Shown here: positions 1 through 12,375 of the stretch, in pieces
How the letters are laid out: every line of letters begins with the position of its first letter
Position numbering within the stretch: position 1 is the stretch's first letter
Origin: Zygophlyctis sp. KS116
Taxonomy: Eukaryota > Fungi > Chytridiomycota
Reading direction: 5' to 3'
Length of the DNA: 12,375 bases
NCBI GenBank assembly: GCA_054661495.1
Contig: BAAFSQ010000291.1
Coordinates: 1-12,375 of the forward strand
Position numbers and translations under genes: made by a program
Notes under the pieces: model-generated
Databases searched by the model: none
What the model was told of the DNA's origin: nothing
Seen by the model: the letters and a program-made list of their open reading frames with translations, nothing else

Positions 1-45
1 CATTCGCATCCCCCGGAAGGTAAGTGCTGAAATTGGGAAATTCAT
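1..45 (-). CDS. Possible 5' end of a divergently transcribed gene, truncated by the window edge (MNFPISALTFRGMRM...)
   Basis: ATG at 45-43 preceded by an A-rich stretch, then 15 open codons to the edge. Too short to verify. Confidence 0.25.
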   Translation of the reverse strand, partial: MNFPISALTFRGMRM

Positions 46-137
46 TTTATTATAATTTTTTCTACTGCGTTTTGTACTAATAAAATTCTTGTGGGTTCTA
101 GAGGTCAATCTTTAGGTGAGGGGGATTTTTGAGCCAA

Positions 138-1280
138 ATGTTCGACTACAAGAATCTGATCAGATCAAAAGCCCAAGAGATCCAGTCGATTGAATCATCA
201 CTAAGATCGCTCTCGTACATTCTCCCTGGTAGATTTAAAGACTCTGAATTTGTGTCTGAATTAAGTATTTTTTACTAATTAATTTGTAGTTTACAGCTGT
301 TGTAATCTGTTTTCTCTGCTGAATGCGTCTATTTTAGGGACTGATCAGACAAAATATTTGCTGGGAGATACACAGCCTTCCCCACACAATCGATACACTA
401 AATCTGTTTTGCTGCTAGTTCCTGATTCTAGGAGAAATCTAGTTGATTGGAAGGATGATGATTTTGAGCGTAATTCGTGGTTGCCGCATTTATCTTATGC
501 ATTGGCCATAATTAGACAATGTGAAATAATTCTAGAAATGGCAGTTTTGAAATGGAAAGACGATGATTCGAGATGGAAGATAGTTGGGATATTGGAGAGT
601 ACAAAGTAAAATTGTATTCTTTAATTACTAGATGCGTAATCAAAACGCTTATTTTTAATTTTACTCAAAATCGTTTACTTTTAGGATCATCAGTATTAGA
701 ATCTGAGCCTATTATTCCTACTAAAGGAACTGATGCTGCTGGAATAGTGGCTTATGGAGAGGAAAAAACTTGGATAGGGAAAAGAACAGGTATAGAACGT
801 CCATTTTCCTGGGCTATTCAAACACGAGGAATAAACTATTTACTGGCTAGAGCTGTTGCTGAAAATTCACCGTTGGATATGGTTAAGCCTTTAAGTGGGA
901 TTAGAAAAGTAGTAGAGTATCTTTATATTTTTAGACCATTGATTTATCTTGCATTGTTGCGTAAATGTGATAAGAAATCTTGGAAGCCATGGTTGATTTC
1001 AATTGGTTTAGAGATTTTAGCTCTATTGCCTTCAAATGGATGGATTACTGAAGCTCCTGCTTTAACTACATTAGAATCTGATGAAATCAAACGAAGACAA
1101 CGCTGTTTACTATTTTACTTGCTAAAGACTCCGTTCTATCAAAATTATTCTAAATCTGTGATTGATAATGTTGTAAAATCTACTGAAACGAAGCCTATTA
1201 TTTCTATTTTCTCTTCAATGATCAAGGATTATCAGCCACTATGGGAAAATTACCATTTCTATACAAATTGCGGGTTATAA
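138..1280 (+). CDS. PEX16: Peroxisomal membrane biogenesis protein Pex16, 363 aa; join(138..264,290..605,632..1280)
   Basis: Spliced translation MFDYKNLIRSKAQEIQSIESSLRSLSYILPGRFKDSEFVSELIYS...PSPHNRYT...EIILEM...RWKIVGILESTKC...EYLYIFRPLIY...SWKPWL...EIKRR...FYLLKTPFY...DYQPLWENYHFYT carries the typical fungal Pex16 blocks. Two GT-AG introns restore the frame and the total of 1092 nt is divisible by 3. Confidence 0.92.
265..289 (+). other. Spliceosomal intron, 25 nt (PEX16 intron 1)
   Basis: gtattttttactaattaatttgtag, with a ctaat branch-like motif. Removal joins SEL to IYS in frame. Confidence 0.88.
606..631 (+). other. Spliceosomal intron, 26 nt (PEX16 intron 2)
   Basis: gtaaaattgtattctttaattactag. 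Joins ORF 358..609 to the frame of ORF 573..1280 (LESTK|CVIK). Confidence 0.88.
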
Positions 1281-2077: not shown

Positions 2078-3519
2078 TTAAACTAAAACTAACAAAAACA
2101 GACTGAAAGCCAAAAGAAGCAATGCAATGCCAACATAAAAAAATTGACGAGGGACAAAAACTTTAATCAGAATTATTCCTATTGCCAAGGCTGAAATCAA
2201 AATAATTCGTAGTTTTTGAGGAGTTATTCCGTATACATTTCCGGACGAATCTTGAAAGGAAAATACATAGTTTAATAAAGCGGGATGTTGTATTCCATTA
2301 GGATATGCATTTGTATTTGGTAATGAGAATAGTAGAGCATCAGCTGTTTCAAGTGCATTTTCCTTAAAATATGCTCTAATTTTAGAATCCATTAAAAAAT
2401 CATCATCTGAAGCAAAATAATGAGCTTCCCAAGTACATTCTTTTACTAAAGGTGTTGTTACATCGGATTTTGTTTTGGTTGCCAAGATTTTAGCACGTTT
2501 TGCTTCATGTTGTGTATGGATTTTCATCCATTCCAAGATAGAATTCGCCCCATCAGAATTGTTTTGATAAGATATTGATCTAACTTTAATGAATAGTTTA
2601 TCTTGATCTTTTGCAATAGTGGAAACATTGACATTAAAATCATCATTTAAATTATTTTCTTTTTTGGGGCTTTGAATTGTGAGCACAGCAGCATCATCGG
2701 CAGAGTTTCTTCTAGATGAAGATACTGAGTTTGCTTTTTTGAGCTTTTCAGGTTGTTTATTTTCTAGTGCCTCTGGTTTAATCATGAAATGTAAAGTCTT
2801 TTTCTTATCCTGAGAATAGCCCAAAATTCTTTCCAATGCTGGAGATAAAATCCTTTCAAATGTGTTTTCGTGATTGGCTGCCATTTCATACAGCTTTGAA
2901 TTTCTTGTTGGACTCCTTTTGGATTTTTGAATTTGACTCCCCCTTTGGATTACATAGTAATGAACATCTCCAACTCTACTTATTAATCAATTGAATATTA
3001 CATTGTCATATTGTTAAGCGGATTTTTAGCTTGCATCCTATGCAGTAGACCTTCTTCTGGCTGCGTTCTAAAAATGATCTTGTTAATATGATGTGCAGCA
3101 TAATAAGAATAATAAAATCGATCAGGATCAACTGGATCAATAGTAGTTACTCTTGCAAGAATGAAATCTTTTCCATTTTCAAGATGCATTCTCACTAGAT
3201 CATCAAATGTTTCGAGAGTAAATGGTTCTTCCGTTTCTTTGGCATCGATCACATCAATGAGCTCTTCTGGGGCATGTGGGGCCTTGATCGTTCTATTTTC
3301 TTCCTGAGGTAATATTGTTTTCTGTATTTCTGATTATTTAGATTGTACCGATTTACCTTTCGCTTGATTAGGAACCCTGCCATACAGTTTAATGAATTGG
3401 GAAGTCTCATTTGTAATCGGATCAATTGTTGTCTTAATAGGCGATATTCTGCGGCGAAGTGAGTCTAGCTCAAAGTGTTCATTTGACATTGGGATTTCAA
3501 CATACGGGGAATCGGACAT
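2078..3519 (-). CDS. Hypothetical protein, 462 aa, with two C-terminal TM helices; reminiscent of DUF5092 (from memory, unverified); complement(join(2078..2975,3002..3329,3357..3519))
   Basis: Three track ORFs are joined in frame by two GT-AG introns (total 1389 nt). Probable start is MSDSPY after aaacataaaaaa. Conserved-looking blocks EPFTLETF...FILARVTT...YSYYAAHHINKIIFR...KNPLNNMTIVGDVHYY and AHYFASDDDFLMDSKIRAYFKEN flank a polar insert, and the C-terminus is a hydrophobic hairpin. Confidence 0.8.
2976..3001 (-). other. Spliceosomal intron, 26 nt
   Basis: gtaatattcaattgattaataagtag. Joins NNMT|IVGDVHYY and runs into the frame of ORF 2078..2884. Confidence 0.85.
3330..3356 (-). other. Spliceosomal intron, 27 nt, containing an in-frame TAA
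   Basis: gtaaatcggtacaatctaaataatcag, with a ctaaa branch-like motif. Joins ORF 3334..3588 to the frame of ORF 2998..3252. Confidence 0.82.
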
Positions 3520-3695: not shown

Positions 3696-6600
3696 TTAAA
3701 CATCTTCAATATCCATCACTGCATCATCAGGGTCCCTTATCCACCTAATAGATCTCTTTGTAACTTGATCATTACTCTCTTCAGCATCTACAGTTTTTGG
3801 AATTTCGTCTGGTAAATATGTAATTTTGTTACTTTCAGTAGATTTTATCTGTGAATTCACTTGATCAGCAGAAATGCTTTTTGTTTGAATAATATCGCAT
3901 TCTTCAAATTTTGCCAATGATACGGTTCTCATAATCCCCGCCGACTGTTCTGATGGGACAATGTTCACTTCTCTTTTCGCTAGGGTAGTGCCTGGATTAG
4001 TGTTAAAATTGGGGTTAACATCAGAACTATGATTTTCTGAATTCCTTTTTTTGTTTTCAGTTGGAGATATGCTTTGCTGATTTGAATATTCTTGTGGATT
4101 TTCCTTTTGATCGTCAATAGAAACGGAATCATCTTGTGATTTAAGTATTGACGGTTGCAATTGTGATTCTTGCTCTTGCAAATGTTCTTCGCTTTTAAGA
4201 GATGAATCTTTCAGTCTAGATTCATCTATGAATGCTGTTATTCCAACGATCAGTATGTATATATTGTAACATATTAAGCCGGATAACCCCGATAAAGCAT
4301 AAATATATCCGGCTGTCGTGTTTTTTGAGGTTAAAATTGAGTAATGTATTGAATCATACGCAACAATCCCATAAATGAAAGCTGAAAATAACGCTAGAGC
4401 AATCGAAACTGACTGCGATCCGAAAAGAATATCGAATGATTCATTTATGGTTCGCCTTTCAATCAATGGTACTGATTTCTTTTTCGGTTTGAATTTTCCA
4501 AAAATAGGATTCTTAGAAAGCTCAGAATCTTCCGCTATATTATTTACCTCGATATGCTCTTCATTCGCCTTCTTCAATGCATCCCGGAGATCTGACTTCT
4601 TCACAATTGTATATCCCAGCCATTCAGCGAGAGATTTGGCTTTTGGAAGTTTTGGCCGCCAAAAATAAACGAATATTAAATAAATAATGCTAAAGGCTCC
4701 TGGAAAACTAACAACTAAATATGCTGCAGTAAGTTTTGTTCCTACGACCAAAGCAACGATGGCTAATAACCACGCACAAGCAAGAACAAATATCAGAGCC
4801 TTAATAATTATCAGAAACCAACGTTTCTCGCTGATTTTGGATCTACTTATCAATACAAAAAATGTTAAAATTTGTCCTAATAATGAAAGCACACAGCCTG
4901 CTACAATACCATAAGCTCCCGCATTGGAACCGGAGACTGCTGAAGATGCCAATATTGATGCTACAGCAGGGCCAATGGTCGAAAGACCCATCATCAAGCT
5001 AAAGATAAAAGACCAACCAAAGGACTCCCAGCGTAAAAAAGTAAAGGCCAAATGACTAATAACCGATACTACCGAACTAATTAACACAGAATGAGAAAAG
5101 GCCAAATTCCCATTTAATTTTAATACAATGAATGATGCACATAGGGCAAATATGCCTGATAAAGTAATAATTATCCCAACGAGGTATATTATGAGAAATT
5201 TGGAAAAAGATGTCTGTCTTATCCAATGTAAATGTCTTTCAGCAGGAGACATTATATTTCTCCAGAGAAGCAAATCATATTCAGCCTCTGAAAGATTTAT
5301 CCGCCCATAATAGCTCTTGTGCAGAATGAACCCAATTGAAGAAACGATAAATATTAAGGATCCAAAAGATTTCAAAATAAAGGATGATTGTGATCCTCGA
5401 CTTGATGATAATATGATTCCAAATATAAAAGAAGATACTCCAAAACTTAAAGTTATACCCAGCCAAACATATCCGATTTTTCTCGAAAGTGAAGAGTCCC
5501 CCCAAGCAATCATCACATAAAGTCCAAACAAAATAAATCCAAACATAAGAAATATCCAGTTACTGATTAGTTCCGGAGTTGTTATAAAATAAACATCGGA
5601 GTGTATTATAAATCCAATAACGAATAATATCCATCCTGCTAAAGATAATATTTGTAAATTTCTCGAATTTGATGAGACTGCCAGAGGAAGTTTTCGGAAA
5701 GAAAACCATGAAATATAGCCCGTCAAAATAAATGAGCTGGCCAGAATATTAAGCATACTCCCTAGAATAACTGGAGCATTGAATCCTAAATGTTCCCCGA
5801 ATAATGCCCAGCACACCGCAAAAGCATTTATTCCAGAATTATAGAAGAGAATAGGTAGCCCAACGTATTGGGCAGTTGTATTTCCTTTAAATATCCAGAA
5901 AATTAGCATAAATATTGCTATCAAACCAAGGGCTATGAAAGAAAAAGTCGCTGAATAGTACGTATTCAATCCTTCCTTCCCTAGCAAGTAGCTGAAAGAT
6001 ACGATAAAAATGAAATAAGACCATATATAAATATTGATGCATGATTTCAGCCAATGCTGCATTGAGGGCCAAGACATGACCATACTATATAAATCAATCT
6101 TTCTATATGTGGCTAATTCTTTATCGCTTTCTACGGTTACAATTAATTGGTCTATTTGAATTGACACCCCGAATACTACTATAGTCCAGAAAGCTAAAAA
6201 GCAGCCGATAATGAACAAGAATGATCCAAATAAGATCAGTAAATTTGAGCTTGATCCAGAATGACATGAGCCAGTTAAGCATTTATTTGAAAGAGTAAAC
6301 GATGAGAAAAACATCGAGCCGGTATTAATAAAAGATCCAAATATTAAAATCACTGATGAGACGCTTATTATTGAGTAATTATCACCAAACGAATATTTAG
6401 CTTCATTTCGATTATTATTGGCGAGGTAAAAGAGGGAAAGCAACGCCATTACGCATAAATATCCAACAATAAAACTCGAGAAAGAGTCTGCAAATGACAG
6501 TCGAACAAACTGAAGATCTTTCGAGTCTGAACGAACTAATACCCCAATTGTGATCAGAATTGTTCCCAGCAATGTTCCAACAATCGACAAAATAAAAAGA

Positions 6601-9600
6601 GGGCGTGACATTAAACTATCTTCTTTAAATTGAACTCCAAATCGAACAAATATCAATGACAGTAATACCATTATGGATACTATGAATCCAGAACATCCAA
6701 TGACCATACATAACTGTGAGGAAAATGGCTTCAACCATAGCACACAAATAAGCCGCCCACAAGAAATACTAGCGATTATGCAGAAAAAAATAGCAAATGA
6801 CATAATATTCCTAGAATTGCGTATTAATGCCCAGGAAAGGGCAAATATAGACATCGGTCCAAAAAGAGAATATAGGATCGCTGCTGCAGAGAAATCTGCG
6901 GGAACAAATCCATCCGAAAGTGCTCCGAATCCAGACAGAAATACTGTCCAGCAAATTAATGCGATCACCGCAAATCCTTTCCAGATATTCCATCGAGTAG
7001 GATTAGTCGTTAAAAAACGGAAGATAAACTCTTCTTCATTTGTGGGTACCAAAGCCTCCATTATTCCTTTAGGATCAAGCTCATCAACCGGATTATCATG
7101 ATAGTTTTCAATTTGAATTTGTGAGATTATTCGTGACTCCATATCCTCCGAAGACTCGCATGCGACCATTTTGGCGATCAATCCAGCGACTGAGCCAAGT
7201 AAATATATCAACCCACCAGAGAGAATCATAGGATTATGGTAAGAACAATCGGAAGCAAATGTGCATCCGTTCATTTGAGTGCCGGCGCTGATGAGTGTTC
7301 CGCCAAGAAAAAAGAAGGAAATTGTGGCTAAAAAAACTCCAAATGAAGTAAGCCACTGGTTAAATTGAATTGTAGATAAAATAAGAAATATGATCGTCAA
7401 TATTCCTGATGCTGCGAATCCCATCATCAAAGGCTCAATTTCCCGTTCAAAATCAGCCTTCGTCCGACCGATACTAACAACTGCTAGTATCCAGCCTACC
7501 AAAGAAAATACAGATGATATTCTAACTACCATATCAGCTTCAAGTGATGAGCGCATTTGCCTACTCGAAGATATGCCACAACCAATCGCTTGAAAGGTGC
7601 TATAAACTCCAGCACCTGTAACCATCAATCGAATACTTGAAATTGAAATTATTCCTGATCCAAAATAAATCACATTTCCGGCACTTAGAGAACATATTAT
7701 AATTAGGAAAGCGTTAATAACAATAGCAATAGTACTTTTATGCAAAGCTACAACGTAGTTTGTAATACAAGATGCTAAACCCAATATTGCCAGCAAATAT
7801 GTCACGCCTGCCAGACTTAAGACATCATTTCCTGAATTTGTATAGCTAGCTCCCCCAACAGCAAAAATTACCCAGCCAGTAAGAGCAACAACTTCGACCA
7901 TAAACATAACCTGCTCAATAGCTTTTTCTAGACTGATCATTTTGCCGAAAATAATTCTCTTTTCTGGCAGTTGTAGCTTAAAGGAATGCACTTCAACAAA
8001 TAAACCATACACCCAATAAGTTCCTAATAAACAAGCAATCAGAATGGGTATAGTTAAGCAGCTGGCCAGCCATGATACAAATGAAGATATCTTTGGTATT
8101 GCTTTAATAGGCTCATCCAGCTGCACAGCTGCATAATTTGAACTGATTAAATTTGTTGAGCTGGCTGGAAATAAAGACGCAGCTCTCCCAGCATGATTAA
8201 TTATGTCATACGAAGCACCTCCATACCTACTCAACTGAATTAAAAGATCAGTTTCTTCATTTTTATCGAATATTACAATAGAAGGAATATTTCTTTTCCG
8301 TGTCGTGGTTAACAGGTAAGGATTTAAGAAGATACTCCGAAATTCGAAGGCGCTTGAATAAATTGCGTTTCCAATCAATTGATCATTGAATATTTGGGCC
8401 TCTGCATCGTACTTTAGAGCCATAAACTCATTACCAAGCCCCATGTTAGCCATATAAACTATCAATGGGAAGCTTTTGGTAATGAAGAAAGGCGAAAATG
8501 AATAATTGTTCATGCAGAACACCTAATATTATCGAATAATTTTTCTTACTGAGCCCAAACTTTTCATCATCAGTAAATCATCGTCAATGTCGAAAAAAAT
8601 ACGGTTTTGTACAGATGGCAGTGAATCAAGCCAAAATTTGAACTCGGCAAGATTTCCAGCTCTTTGCTTTGCTGAATGAAATTTGATATAAATACCCTGT
8701 GATTCAGTGAGTGAGTTAGAATAAACAGAAGGGGTTTGGTCTATTTGAACAAATGAAGTTGAAAACCCAGTGTCATTGATTGATCTACCCCAAAATAATG
8801 GAGTGATAAACGCCACGATCATTGATATAACTATGAAAACAACAAGAGCGCCACCATGTGCTAAAAGGTACAACCATCTATTTGTAGGTAAATATCCAGA
8901 AATGGCGATTGATACTGCAATTATCACAAGCATTAAAGATAGTGGTAGATAAAGCCCTGAACATAAACTAACGAAAAAAGATCCGAAAATGGAACTTAGA
9001 GCCAAATATCTGAAAAAAATCCATTTTACGTTCGACGATACTTCATTTTTCAAGTCTTCAAACCTATTTTCCGAATTGACTTCTTCATGTGTATCCGAAA
9101 TTCCAGGATTGATCAAGCTTTTAGATTTATCAGGATTATTTCTGGAAGGATCACATGCTAATATAATAGTACATACAGGCCATAAGTATGCAGAAACGTA
9201 AATAGAAAAATCTCCTGATAATACGACTGCTAATATGATAGTTATAATATATGATACACCAAAAATATAAGATGTAATTGATTGATTTCTCGTCCATTTT
9301 ATCGGACTTAGACCGAGTCCGCCGAAAAAGAAATGACTCGTCAAAATAATGCTGACTGAAATCACTATAGATTGAATCAACCCTTTTTCATGGCCAAATA
9401 AATAATAAATTGCAAAAAGGTAGTATGAAATCAATAATGTCCCAAAAGACACCCCGCTCCACAAAGCTGTTGAATAGTAATATTTAATCTTTTTTTGTCT
9501 CTTTGAAAGAACCTGTTCCATGTTTGAGCCGTCTAGTGTTTTATTTGAATCCATTTTAACCAAGGGCGGTAAGTCTCCAAAAAAGCGTCGTAAGGGCGTC

Positions 9601-10651
9601 AAGTAGTTTTGAGAGGTATTAGCTTGATTATCAGATTTTAAAAACGAGGTTTTTCTTGGTTCTTCCAATGAAATCATAAATTTAGACTCTAAATTCAACT
9701 GACTTTCATGCAAAACTTTTTGGAAAGTCAGCGCAAAGTATAGATTCATCAGCATCAAAGAGATAAAATAATACCATTCATAAAAACGGACTGAAATATT
9801 ATCTGTTATCGGACAAATTCCAATTGAAAACATGACAGATAAAATACTATAAATGATTGTAAAAAAGGATATTGATCTGTTAAATAGAAAAATCTATGAT
9901 TTAGTTTGAGAAATATACATTATAGTCTACAAAATTTGTATCTGTAATCAATACAGAAAACAAAAAACTAGACAATGCAATCAGAAATCTAAAGACATTC
10001 ATAATATCTAAAACGATCAATGAAACTTTTCCTAGAGTATAACTAGAATCCGATGAGCTTCCAACATATGACCCGATTGCTATTAGATAAACTGCAGCTG
10101 GTAGTATAATAATCCATGCTAATTTTTGAATTTTAAATCTAATCTCTTCCGATTCCATCCACAATCTATCATAAAAGCATTATATAGTTACCTTATTACA
10201 ATCACAGATGTCACAATCTGTATGAGATACAATAATACTTCAGAGACTGCAGAGAGAAAAATATAAATTTGAGAGTTAACCGTGTATAATACAAAACCTG
10301 AAATCCATGAAATCGAAAATAAAATTGCTGATGAGTGAAGTATTAAATGCATTTTTTGATAATCATTGAATGAAATCCAATCTAAAGATCCAACCATATT
10401 CCTATAAAATAACGCAACCTTGATTAATGATGCGATTGCAAATAATAACCCAAAAACAGCAAGTAGTAAATGACCGTTTGAGTATCCAATCTTTTCTTTA
10501 ATACTTTGAGCAATACCTGGGCAGAATATAATATATAACCGCGCATAGAGTCATGAGTAAAAAATCCAGAGACTGGACAACTTGATGATAACTGTACATC
10601 TTCAGTTGATAAAGCAAACTGACAAAATTCTAGAGTTAGATTTTGCCGCAT
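3696..10651 (-). CDS. Giant polytopic membrane protein, ~2283 aa; complement(join(3696..8522,8550..9893,9919..10165,10192..10490,10517..10651)); alternative start at 10546
   Basis: Five track ORFs are joined by four 25-27 nt GTA..AG introns, each frame-consistent, giving 6852 nt (2283 aa plus TAA). About 47 hydrophobic helices by eye. The start codon is uncertain. Confidence 0.82.
4227..7913 (-). repeat. Eight degenerate tandem 4-TM protein repeats, arranged as 4 pairs
   Basis: TM1 cores: ALTGWVIFAVG, SLVGWILAVVS, ALICWTVFLSG, TLLGTILITIG, YIWSYFIFIVS, SLAGWILFVIG, YLVGIIITLSG, LACAWLLAIVA. They lie at residues ~217, 344, 525, 654, 836, 964, 1117 and 1251 of ORF 3696..8522. Each unit's TM4 shows an hhhG[SAGC]hhxhh pattern. 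Confidence 0.7.
8523..8549 (-). other. Spliceosomal intron, 27 nt, containing in-frame TAA and TAG
   Basis: gtaagaaaaattattcgataatattag, with a strong GTAAG donor. Joins SLGS|VFCM. Confidence 0.88.
9894..9918 (-). other. Spliceosomal intron, 25 nt
   Basis: gtatatttctcaaactaaatcatag, with a ctaaa branch-like motif. Joins VDYN|IFLF and continues in frame into ORF 8529..9833. Confidence 0.85.
10166..10191 (-). other. Spliceosomal intron, 26 nt
   Basis: gtaactatataatgcttttatgatag. Joins VIVIR|LWMESE. Confidence 0.83.
10491..10516 (-). other. Spliceosomal intron, 26 nt (AAG acceptor)
   Basis: CAG|gtattgctcaaagtattaaagaaaag|ATT. Joins YSAQ|IGYSNGHLLLAVFGLLF and adds a TM helix upstream of ORF 10188..10397. 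Confidence 0.7.
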
Positions 10652-11482: not shown

Positions 11483-12375
11483 ATGCAACCAAGCTCCTTG
11501 CTATACTTCTTATCTTTATCTGCATCTGTTCTTTCAGTCACAAATGATGACTTTTTTGCACTCGAGGTTAAACTTCAAGAATACATTGCAAGAAATCCTC
11601 AACGTCATATTCCTTTACTCGTCAGAAATAGTTTCCATGATCTATTTCTACAAGACACAGGAGGCCTACATGGATGCATCGTTCAGCCTGAATTCTTTGC
11701 CGATAAGGAGAATGGAGGCCTGGATGTTACCAACAATGATATTAAAAACATTGTTGAAACAAATTTCCCCAAAGCAGGATTCTCTTACGGTGATGTAGTT
11801 GCATTCGCCGGAAAAGTTGCAGTAGAATCCGCTTTACCTTGTGTAAACGTTGATTTCAAGTTCAACAGAGCTGCCTGCAACACAAAACCCAGGAACCGCA
11901 ATCGAGCACCATCTGCATTTTTTGATGAATTGAAAAAGTTTGATGATATGCTGGAGTATTTGGGAGGTAGTTTGACCGCTGAAGATATAGCGATTCTCTC
12001 TATGGGAGGCCATGGCATTCAGGGTGCTGCAGCTGGCCCATCGGGTTGGTTCGGAATATTCGCTACGGTTAACTCTGGAAAAGATTACATTGCAAAGACA
12101 TTCTCTTCGGTCTGGAAAGAGATCAAGGAAGGAACTAAGCTTCAATACTTCACTGGTGCGGCATTCGATCCAAAATCTAGTATTATCCGTCTTCCAACTG
12201 ATATGATTTTTTTCCCAAGTAAAGTTCCAAAAGAATCAAAGGCGGATGATAGTGCCGAGGCAAAAAATATTGAAAATACACTAAAGTCATTTATCAACCA
12301 GGATAGTAGTGTATTCGATGCGAAGTTTGCGCAAGTTTTTTCAAAAATGCTTTTGATAGGAGGAGGCGATCAAGT
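11483..12375 (+). CDS. Secreted heme peroxidase of the peroxidase-catalase (non-animal) superfamily; 3' end lies beyond the window
   Basis: Hand translation gives 297 uninterrupted codons that are absent from the track. It has a signal-like N-terminus MQPSSLLYFLSLSASVLS, distal LVRNSFHD (11624-11641), ENGGL, SYGDVVAFAGKVAVE, proximal GGHGI (His at 12011), RLPTD, and FDAKFAQVFSKMLLIG. Confidence 0.9.
   Translation, partial: MQPSSLLYFLSLSASVLSVTNDDFFALEVKLQEYIARNPQRHIPLLVRNSFHDLFLQDTGGLHGCIVQPEFFADKENGGLDVTNNDIKNIVETNFPKAGFSYGDVVAFAGKVAVESALPCVNVDFKFNRAACNTKPRNRNRAPSAFFDELKKFDDMLEYLGGSLTAEDIAILSMGGHGIQGAAAGPSGWFGIFATVNSGKDYIAKTFSSVWKEIKEGTKLQYFTGAAFDPKSSIIRLPTDMIFFPSKVPKESKADDSAEAKNIENTLKSFINQDSSVFDAKFAQVFSKMLLIGGGDQ

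Follow-up and report, generated by a model that had tools for sequence, protein, structure and literature searches.

Results

The 12,375-nt contig BAAFSQ010000291.1 of the chytrid Zygophlyctis sp. KS116 (assembly GCA_054661495.1) was analysed at its complete length and is called the window here; the source genome is 12.7 Mb, AT-rich and gene-dense. In the ORF (open reading frame) list of the window, five ORFs, all on the minus strand, make up one locus running from position 10651 to 3696. Removal of four GT-AG introns of 26, 26, 25 and 27 nt joined them into a single frame, a 6852-nt coding sequence of 2283 amino acids (aa) in which the sole stop is the terminal one. By its sequence the locus is a single undescribed chytrid gene encoding one chain with about 47 predicted transmembrane (TM) helices. 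All features of the gene given below lie on the minus strand.

Exon 1 (10517..10651, aa 1-45) encodes the predicted extracellular N-terminus with Cys10 and Cys25; no signal peptide was seen in it, and its ATG is placed identically in the relative L004. Intron 1 (10491..10516; 26 nt, phase 0) is followed by exon 2 (10192..10490), which holds TM1-3 of the first 7TM block, intron 2 (10166..10191; 26 nt, phase 2), exon 3 (9919..10165) with TM4-5, and intron 3 (9894..9918; 25 nt, phase 0), which has a 3-nt insertion in the sister strain L003. Exon 4 (8550..9893) carries TM6-7, the cytosolic linker, the second 7-helix block and the start of an outer barrel. Intron 4 (8523..8549; 27 nt, phase 0) contains an in-frame stop. 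Exon 5 (3696..8522) encodes the remaining barrel, TM15, eight four-helix units, the tail and the stop; the chance of such a stop-free frame of 1608 codons at the given base composition is about 1e-52.

The junctions were examined by an unbiased scan of every possible GT..AG pair in relatives. All four were re-picked in L003, L004, L005 and L007, introns 2-4 were recovered in L006 and intron 4 in L008. Codon and phase of all four introns are kept in relatives of 55-95% identity, and introns 1-3 are identical in position and phase in Spizellomyces punctatus. The relatives' introns are 23-38 nt long, with sequence unrelated beyond the sister strain. Intron 1 looked the least certain of the four owing to its AAG acceptor; a longer alternative was ruled out by the conserved junctions in relatives. 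A frameshift in L003 was rejected as an assembly artefact because it sits on an N scaffold gap. The recurrence of the same junctions, together with the annotation of relatives as single proteins, supports the first-pass annotation, made from the window's letters alone, in which four micro-introns fused the five ORFs into a frame of about 2283 aa.

Single exons or database proteins served as queries in all searches. The homologue search, in which the leading 1200 aa of exon 5 were compared with 1.8 billion representative sequences, returned 19 matches. Full-length single-protein orthologues are present in S. punctatus (SPPG_01040, XP_016611604; 2548 aa) and Phlyctochytrium arcticum (KAI9095191; 2549 aa), and Gaertneriomyces semiglobifer has a 2696-aa full-length version. 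Partial entries come from Gaertneriomyces, Borealophlyctis, Rhizophlyctis, Blyttiomyces, Zopfochytrium, Obelidium and Podochytrium. Every orthologue entry is labelled 'hypothetical', Pfam assigns no family to any of them, and the literature search found no paper mentioning the family accessions searched. All named relatives are chytrids, and at least three chytrid orders have kept the gene; one single-sequence search gave no match outside Chytridiomycota, and metagenome pattern scans found nothing. By the hydropathy rule applied to the window protein, the three full-length orthologues have 47, 47 and 45 predicted helices. This SPPG_01040 family shares module order, cysteines and, in Spizellomyces, introns 1-3 with the Zygophlyctis protein at 24-29% identity in the matched stretches, but its tails are longer. 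In a tree of units 1-3 the window protein fell together with three sequences from the environment (100/100), separate from the named orders. The gene is single-copy, without a paralogue in its own genome.

The first-pass annotation had recognised no family with this architecture and had proposed a search for full-length chytrid orthologues. These were found, all of them hypothetical, with no full-length match to a characterised family and no Pfam match, as the first pass had it; what had been missed was that a chytrid-wide family already lies in GenBank, that the soluble domain is like a degenerate GDPD barrel and that the number of repeats varies.

Against the sister strain L003 the synonymous divergence (dS) was 0.062 and the non-synonymous divergence (dN) 0.020, a ratio of 0.32, and by this comparison the gene is under purifying selection. 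In block A and the barrel, and in units 1-2 and 7-8, the ratio was 0.13-0.19, the two pairs of units alone giving 0.13-0.18. Units 5-6 (5304-6074) gave 0.85, from the small counts of 24 non-synonymous and 8 synonymous changes, and may be under relaxed or diversifying selection between the two strains.

Hydropathy analysis gave 44-47 TM segments, depending on the threshold. The predicted layout is 7 TM, an 86-aa linker, 7 TM, a 228-aa gap, 1 TM, 32 TM and a 176-aa tail, which agrees with the earlier count of about 47 and with its modular grouping. When the N-terminus is placed outside, the Lys/Arg density is 0.136 on the inner flanks and 0.067 on the outer ones, and all eight family-conserved loop cysteines (10, 25, 254, 678, 1095, 1101, 1423 and 1428) fall outside; Cys10 and Cys25 are present in three of three full-length relatives. 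The N-terminus-out topology assumed in the first pass is favoured by these two observations, while the glycosylation sequons also invoked there add little, as only 5 of 14 lie outside.

Block A (module A, aa 53-288; 9711..10469) is a 7TM block with a conserved Cys254-Pro and with Trp267/Tyr269 in TM7. Hydropathy, positive-inside bias and cysteine placement agree with seven helices and an outer N-terminus. In language-model features (Atlas), the nearest neighbours of the Spizellomyces block A were unnamed fungal 7TM clusters of about 300 aa (0.91-0.92), followed by DUF7702, RTA1, DUF3112 and THH1/TOM1 at 0.84-0.87. No hidden Markov model or Pfam match of block A to DUF3112, RTA1, TOM1 or another family was obtained. 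DUF3112 is listed as class 12 of the G-protein-coupled receptors (GPCRs) of fungi (PMC12842992). These fungal GPCR-like families have in common with block A the seven helices and a short outer N-terminus with Cys, but here 40 more helices follow and a Pfam match is lacking. The embedding neighbours give a lead, and weakly suggest that block A is GPCR-like. Block B (module B, aa 375-594; 8793..9452) is a second 7-helix block, built as four helices, a basic inner loop and three helices, for which no Pfam or PDB match, nor one of any other kind, was found.

Module C (aa 599-815; 8103..8780) is predicted to be an extracellular beta/alpha domain with invariant Cys678, Asn-Pro 742-743 and Arg752. 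Fold searches with this domain were led by GDPD/lysophospholipase D folds, GDPD being the best match and over the whole length; the models point weakly to a GDPD-like fold. An alpha/beta-hydrolase reading was dropped, as TIM barrels were favoured by the fold searches. The insertion domain of the GDPD phosphodiesterases (PF03009) appears to be missing here. No PF03009 match was found in this gene or the family members, whereas its own genome has four such matches elsewhere. Catalytic positions were compared by motif and not by structural alignment: none of the HR, ExD and HD motifs is shared across the six domains compared, they are absent from the N-terminal half, and in barrel strand 2 Tyr/Leu was seen by eye in place of the expected Glu. 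The enzyme-like outer domain is therefore probably dead by its sequence. The genome also holds an intact single-ORF GDPD gene (L012:1108-1857, minus strand) and an ankyrin-GDPD gene, GDE1-like (L011), so other genes provide for ordinary GDPD activity. GDE2 and GDE3 have the order helices-barrel-helix, and in membrane-bound GDE2/3/6, as in this protein, helices precede the domain and one helix follows it. That helix is here TM15 (8025..8081), with conserved Trp826 and Pro834, which would bring the chain back inside.

The remaining helices form eight four-helix units. Units 1+2 (aa 872-1130; 7158..7934) are a 4+4 helix doublet with Cys1095/Cys1101 in an outer loop; their AlphaFold2 model has eight full helices, with a pLDDT (predicted local distance difference test) of 93.3 and a pTM (predicted TM-score) of 0.90. 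Units 3+4 (aa 1183-1465; 6153..7001) carry Cys1423/Cys1428 in an outer loop, and units 5+6 (aa 1492-1748; 5304..6074) follow. Units 7+8 (aa 1778-2110; 4218..5216) end in a divergent unit 8 with an 83-aa basic inner loop. The units, aligned with one another by hhalign, are only 10-24% alike, and all their scores in the Atlas feature search were under 0.8. Repeat homology among them and the four-helix unit fold were shown at the level of alignments and models. The number of units varies across the family from eight to four. The orthologue L049, carried by four contigs and syntenic with DUF5092 and PEX16, has blocks A and B, the barrel and TM15, followed by four units only; units 5+6 are among those missing. 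About 470 nt separate the end of its last unit from the DUF5092 match and leave no room for more, and L049 is predicted from its sequence to be a 31-helix form. The polar tail (176 aa; 3696..4226), predicted to be cytosolic, ends in a basic-Trp-hydrophobic motif (Trp2269). Tails in relatives are 79-558 aa long and most complete ones have this end, which is a likely docking site.

Among known systems, MLC1 (modulator of VRAC current 1) was the best Atlas match of the doublet, with a TM-score of 0.51 over 167 residues, only residues 83-257 of 257 being covered. A 4+4 helix internal repeat is common to both, and both halves resemble the copper-storage bundle 6Q6B. MLC1 has one doublet, whereas four doublets and three other modules are present here, and the likeness seen is a structural one. 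Tetraspanin, MS4A, claudin/TARP, sarcospan and LCI1 are also four-helix bundles, but eight units stand here in each chain and the fold is generic; of the tetraspanin hallmark, neither a large EC2 loop (no TM3-TM4 loop exceeds about 31 aa) nor CCG was found in the model. Of other four-helix candidates, a Sho1 reading was rejected, since the unit profile scored at shuffle level against the Sho1-like protein of the same genome and the gene has no SH3, and an AWPM-19 reading gave no PF05512 match. The Sho1-like protein (L038:808-1671, contig C60) has an SH3 domain after four hydrophobic helices and is unrelated to the repeats in sequence.

The neighbouring genes of the window are PEX16, a CTP cytidylyltransferase, a DUF5092 gene, a flavin-reductase-like gene and a secreted peroxidase. 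DUF5092 (window 2078-3519, minus strand) adjoins the gene in five environmental relatives (L003, L008, L049, L052 and L053), down to about 22% identity, and PEX16 (1-1280, plus strand) in four; in Spizellomyces and Gaertneriomyces neither was seen at distances up to 3-4 kb. This linkage probably reflects old gene order rather than shared function. In the environmental relative L004 (2549-4406, minus strand) and in G. semiglobifer (L054:1-1602, minus strand), but not in the window, the opposite strand carries a RasGEF gene upstream. The secreted heme peroxidase (11483-12375, plus strand; PF00141, E 1e-10) runs off the contig end, and the sister strain has a 299-nt insertion (L003:902-1200; window 11403) between the flavin-reductase-like gene and the peroxidase.

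Discussion

The analysis is read, with confidence somewhat short of even, as describing a non-catalytic cell-surface sensor with a built-in tetraspan scaffold, encoded by a single-copy chytrid gene; its location, ligand, partners and direction of signalling are inferred. An outside cue would be bound by the GPCR-like block A, the dead GDPD-like barrel or both; for the barrel, a lipid head group or a glycerophosphodiester is a plausible ligand. The four rigid 4+4 doublets would form a covalently linked tetraspan platform, a role that tetraspanins, TARPs, sarcospan and MLC1 play in trans. The platform may hold and tune partner channels or signalling proteins, and output would run by way of the inner linkers and of the disordered tail, whose terminal motif is conserved. 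The receptor/sensor-scaffold named in the first pass fits the module resemblances found; the channel-like alternative offered beside it has no support from homology: a pore module is lacking, and the units modelled are simple bundles of four helices.

A channel or transporter would require the units to form a conduit within or between chains, as in LCI1, a four-helix CO2 channel that is trimeric; the N-terminal sensor blocks would then gate this conduit. This is unlikely, for no pore loop or filter was found and the units are dissimilar and vary in number. A K2P/TOK reading was also dropped: its profile match (E 5e-4) is due to a Gly-x-Gly where a helix ends, there is no conserved Thr, and the model consists of full helices. 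A role in lipid handling appears somewhat less probable still. Block A would then be an RTA1-like lipid translocase, the barrel a GDPD-derived lipid or glycosylphosphatidylinositol (GPI) binder like a dead GDE, and the array an organiser of a lipid domain. The RTA1 rows for block A (0.84-0.86), the leading GDPD/lysophospholipase D folds, the GDE2/3-like module order and a CTP cytidylyltransferase as next-but-one gene speak for this proposal, but no sequence match to the RTA1, GDPD or GDE families was obtained, the cytidylyltransferase neighbour is absent in L049 and Spizellomyces, and 32 further helices are left unexplained. A false fusion of two or more neighbouring genes is very improbable. 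Several database entries (P0012, P0010 and P0017) cover part of the protein or begin at the barrel, yet the borders A/B and C/TM15, like those of all units, fall within stop-free exons, the introns are conserved, three genomes annotate one protein of 2548-2696 aa, and a sister species of the short P0012 entry carries the full protein.

A mechano- or osmosensor working like the Piezo blade, in which the chain of units would bend the membrane and relay tension to block A or to a partner channel, is by analogy about as doubtful as lipid handling. Very long chains with tandem four-helix units occur in both proteins, the other four-helix proteins Sho1 and PM19L1 are osmosensors, and chytrid zoospores have no wall and face osmotic stress. 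Against this, neither the Sho1-like protein of the same genome nor AWPM-19 shows similarity, and the comparison with Piezo drawn in the first pass yielded no homology by sequence or fold: there was no Pfam or PDB match, and Piezo was not among the Foldseek/VIA rows listed for the doublet. The repeats are C-terminal here, without a beam, and in place of the C-terminal pore module of Piezo (outer helix, extracellular cap, inner helix and C-terminal domain) the chain ends in a variable polar tail. Piezo1 has 38 TM (PMC10333744), a number exceeded by the 47 helices predicted here. A further proposal, of low probability, is that flagellated fungi possess a new single-chain receptor class. A sensor of GPCR fold and a ligand-binding pseudo-enzyme barrel would be wired to the tandem tetraspan units, and these would themselves make up a gated pore or a blade that senses tension; zoosporic fungi would then have an independent sensory machine of Piezo size.

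No described family was found that joins these modules in one architecture, while the modelled modules each resemble known folds. The natural 4-unit variant and the well-modelled 4+4 doublet also give a way into the study of MLC1-type proteins. As the full gene is present in S. punctatus, tagging and expression studies are possible. Kept across at least three orders and, in one single-sequence search, not found outside the chytrids, the protein is a concrete candidate for the sensing of surfaces, chemicals or osmotic change by these fungi.
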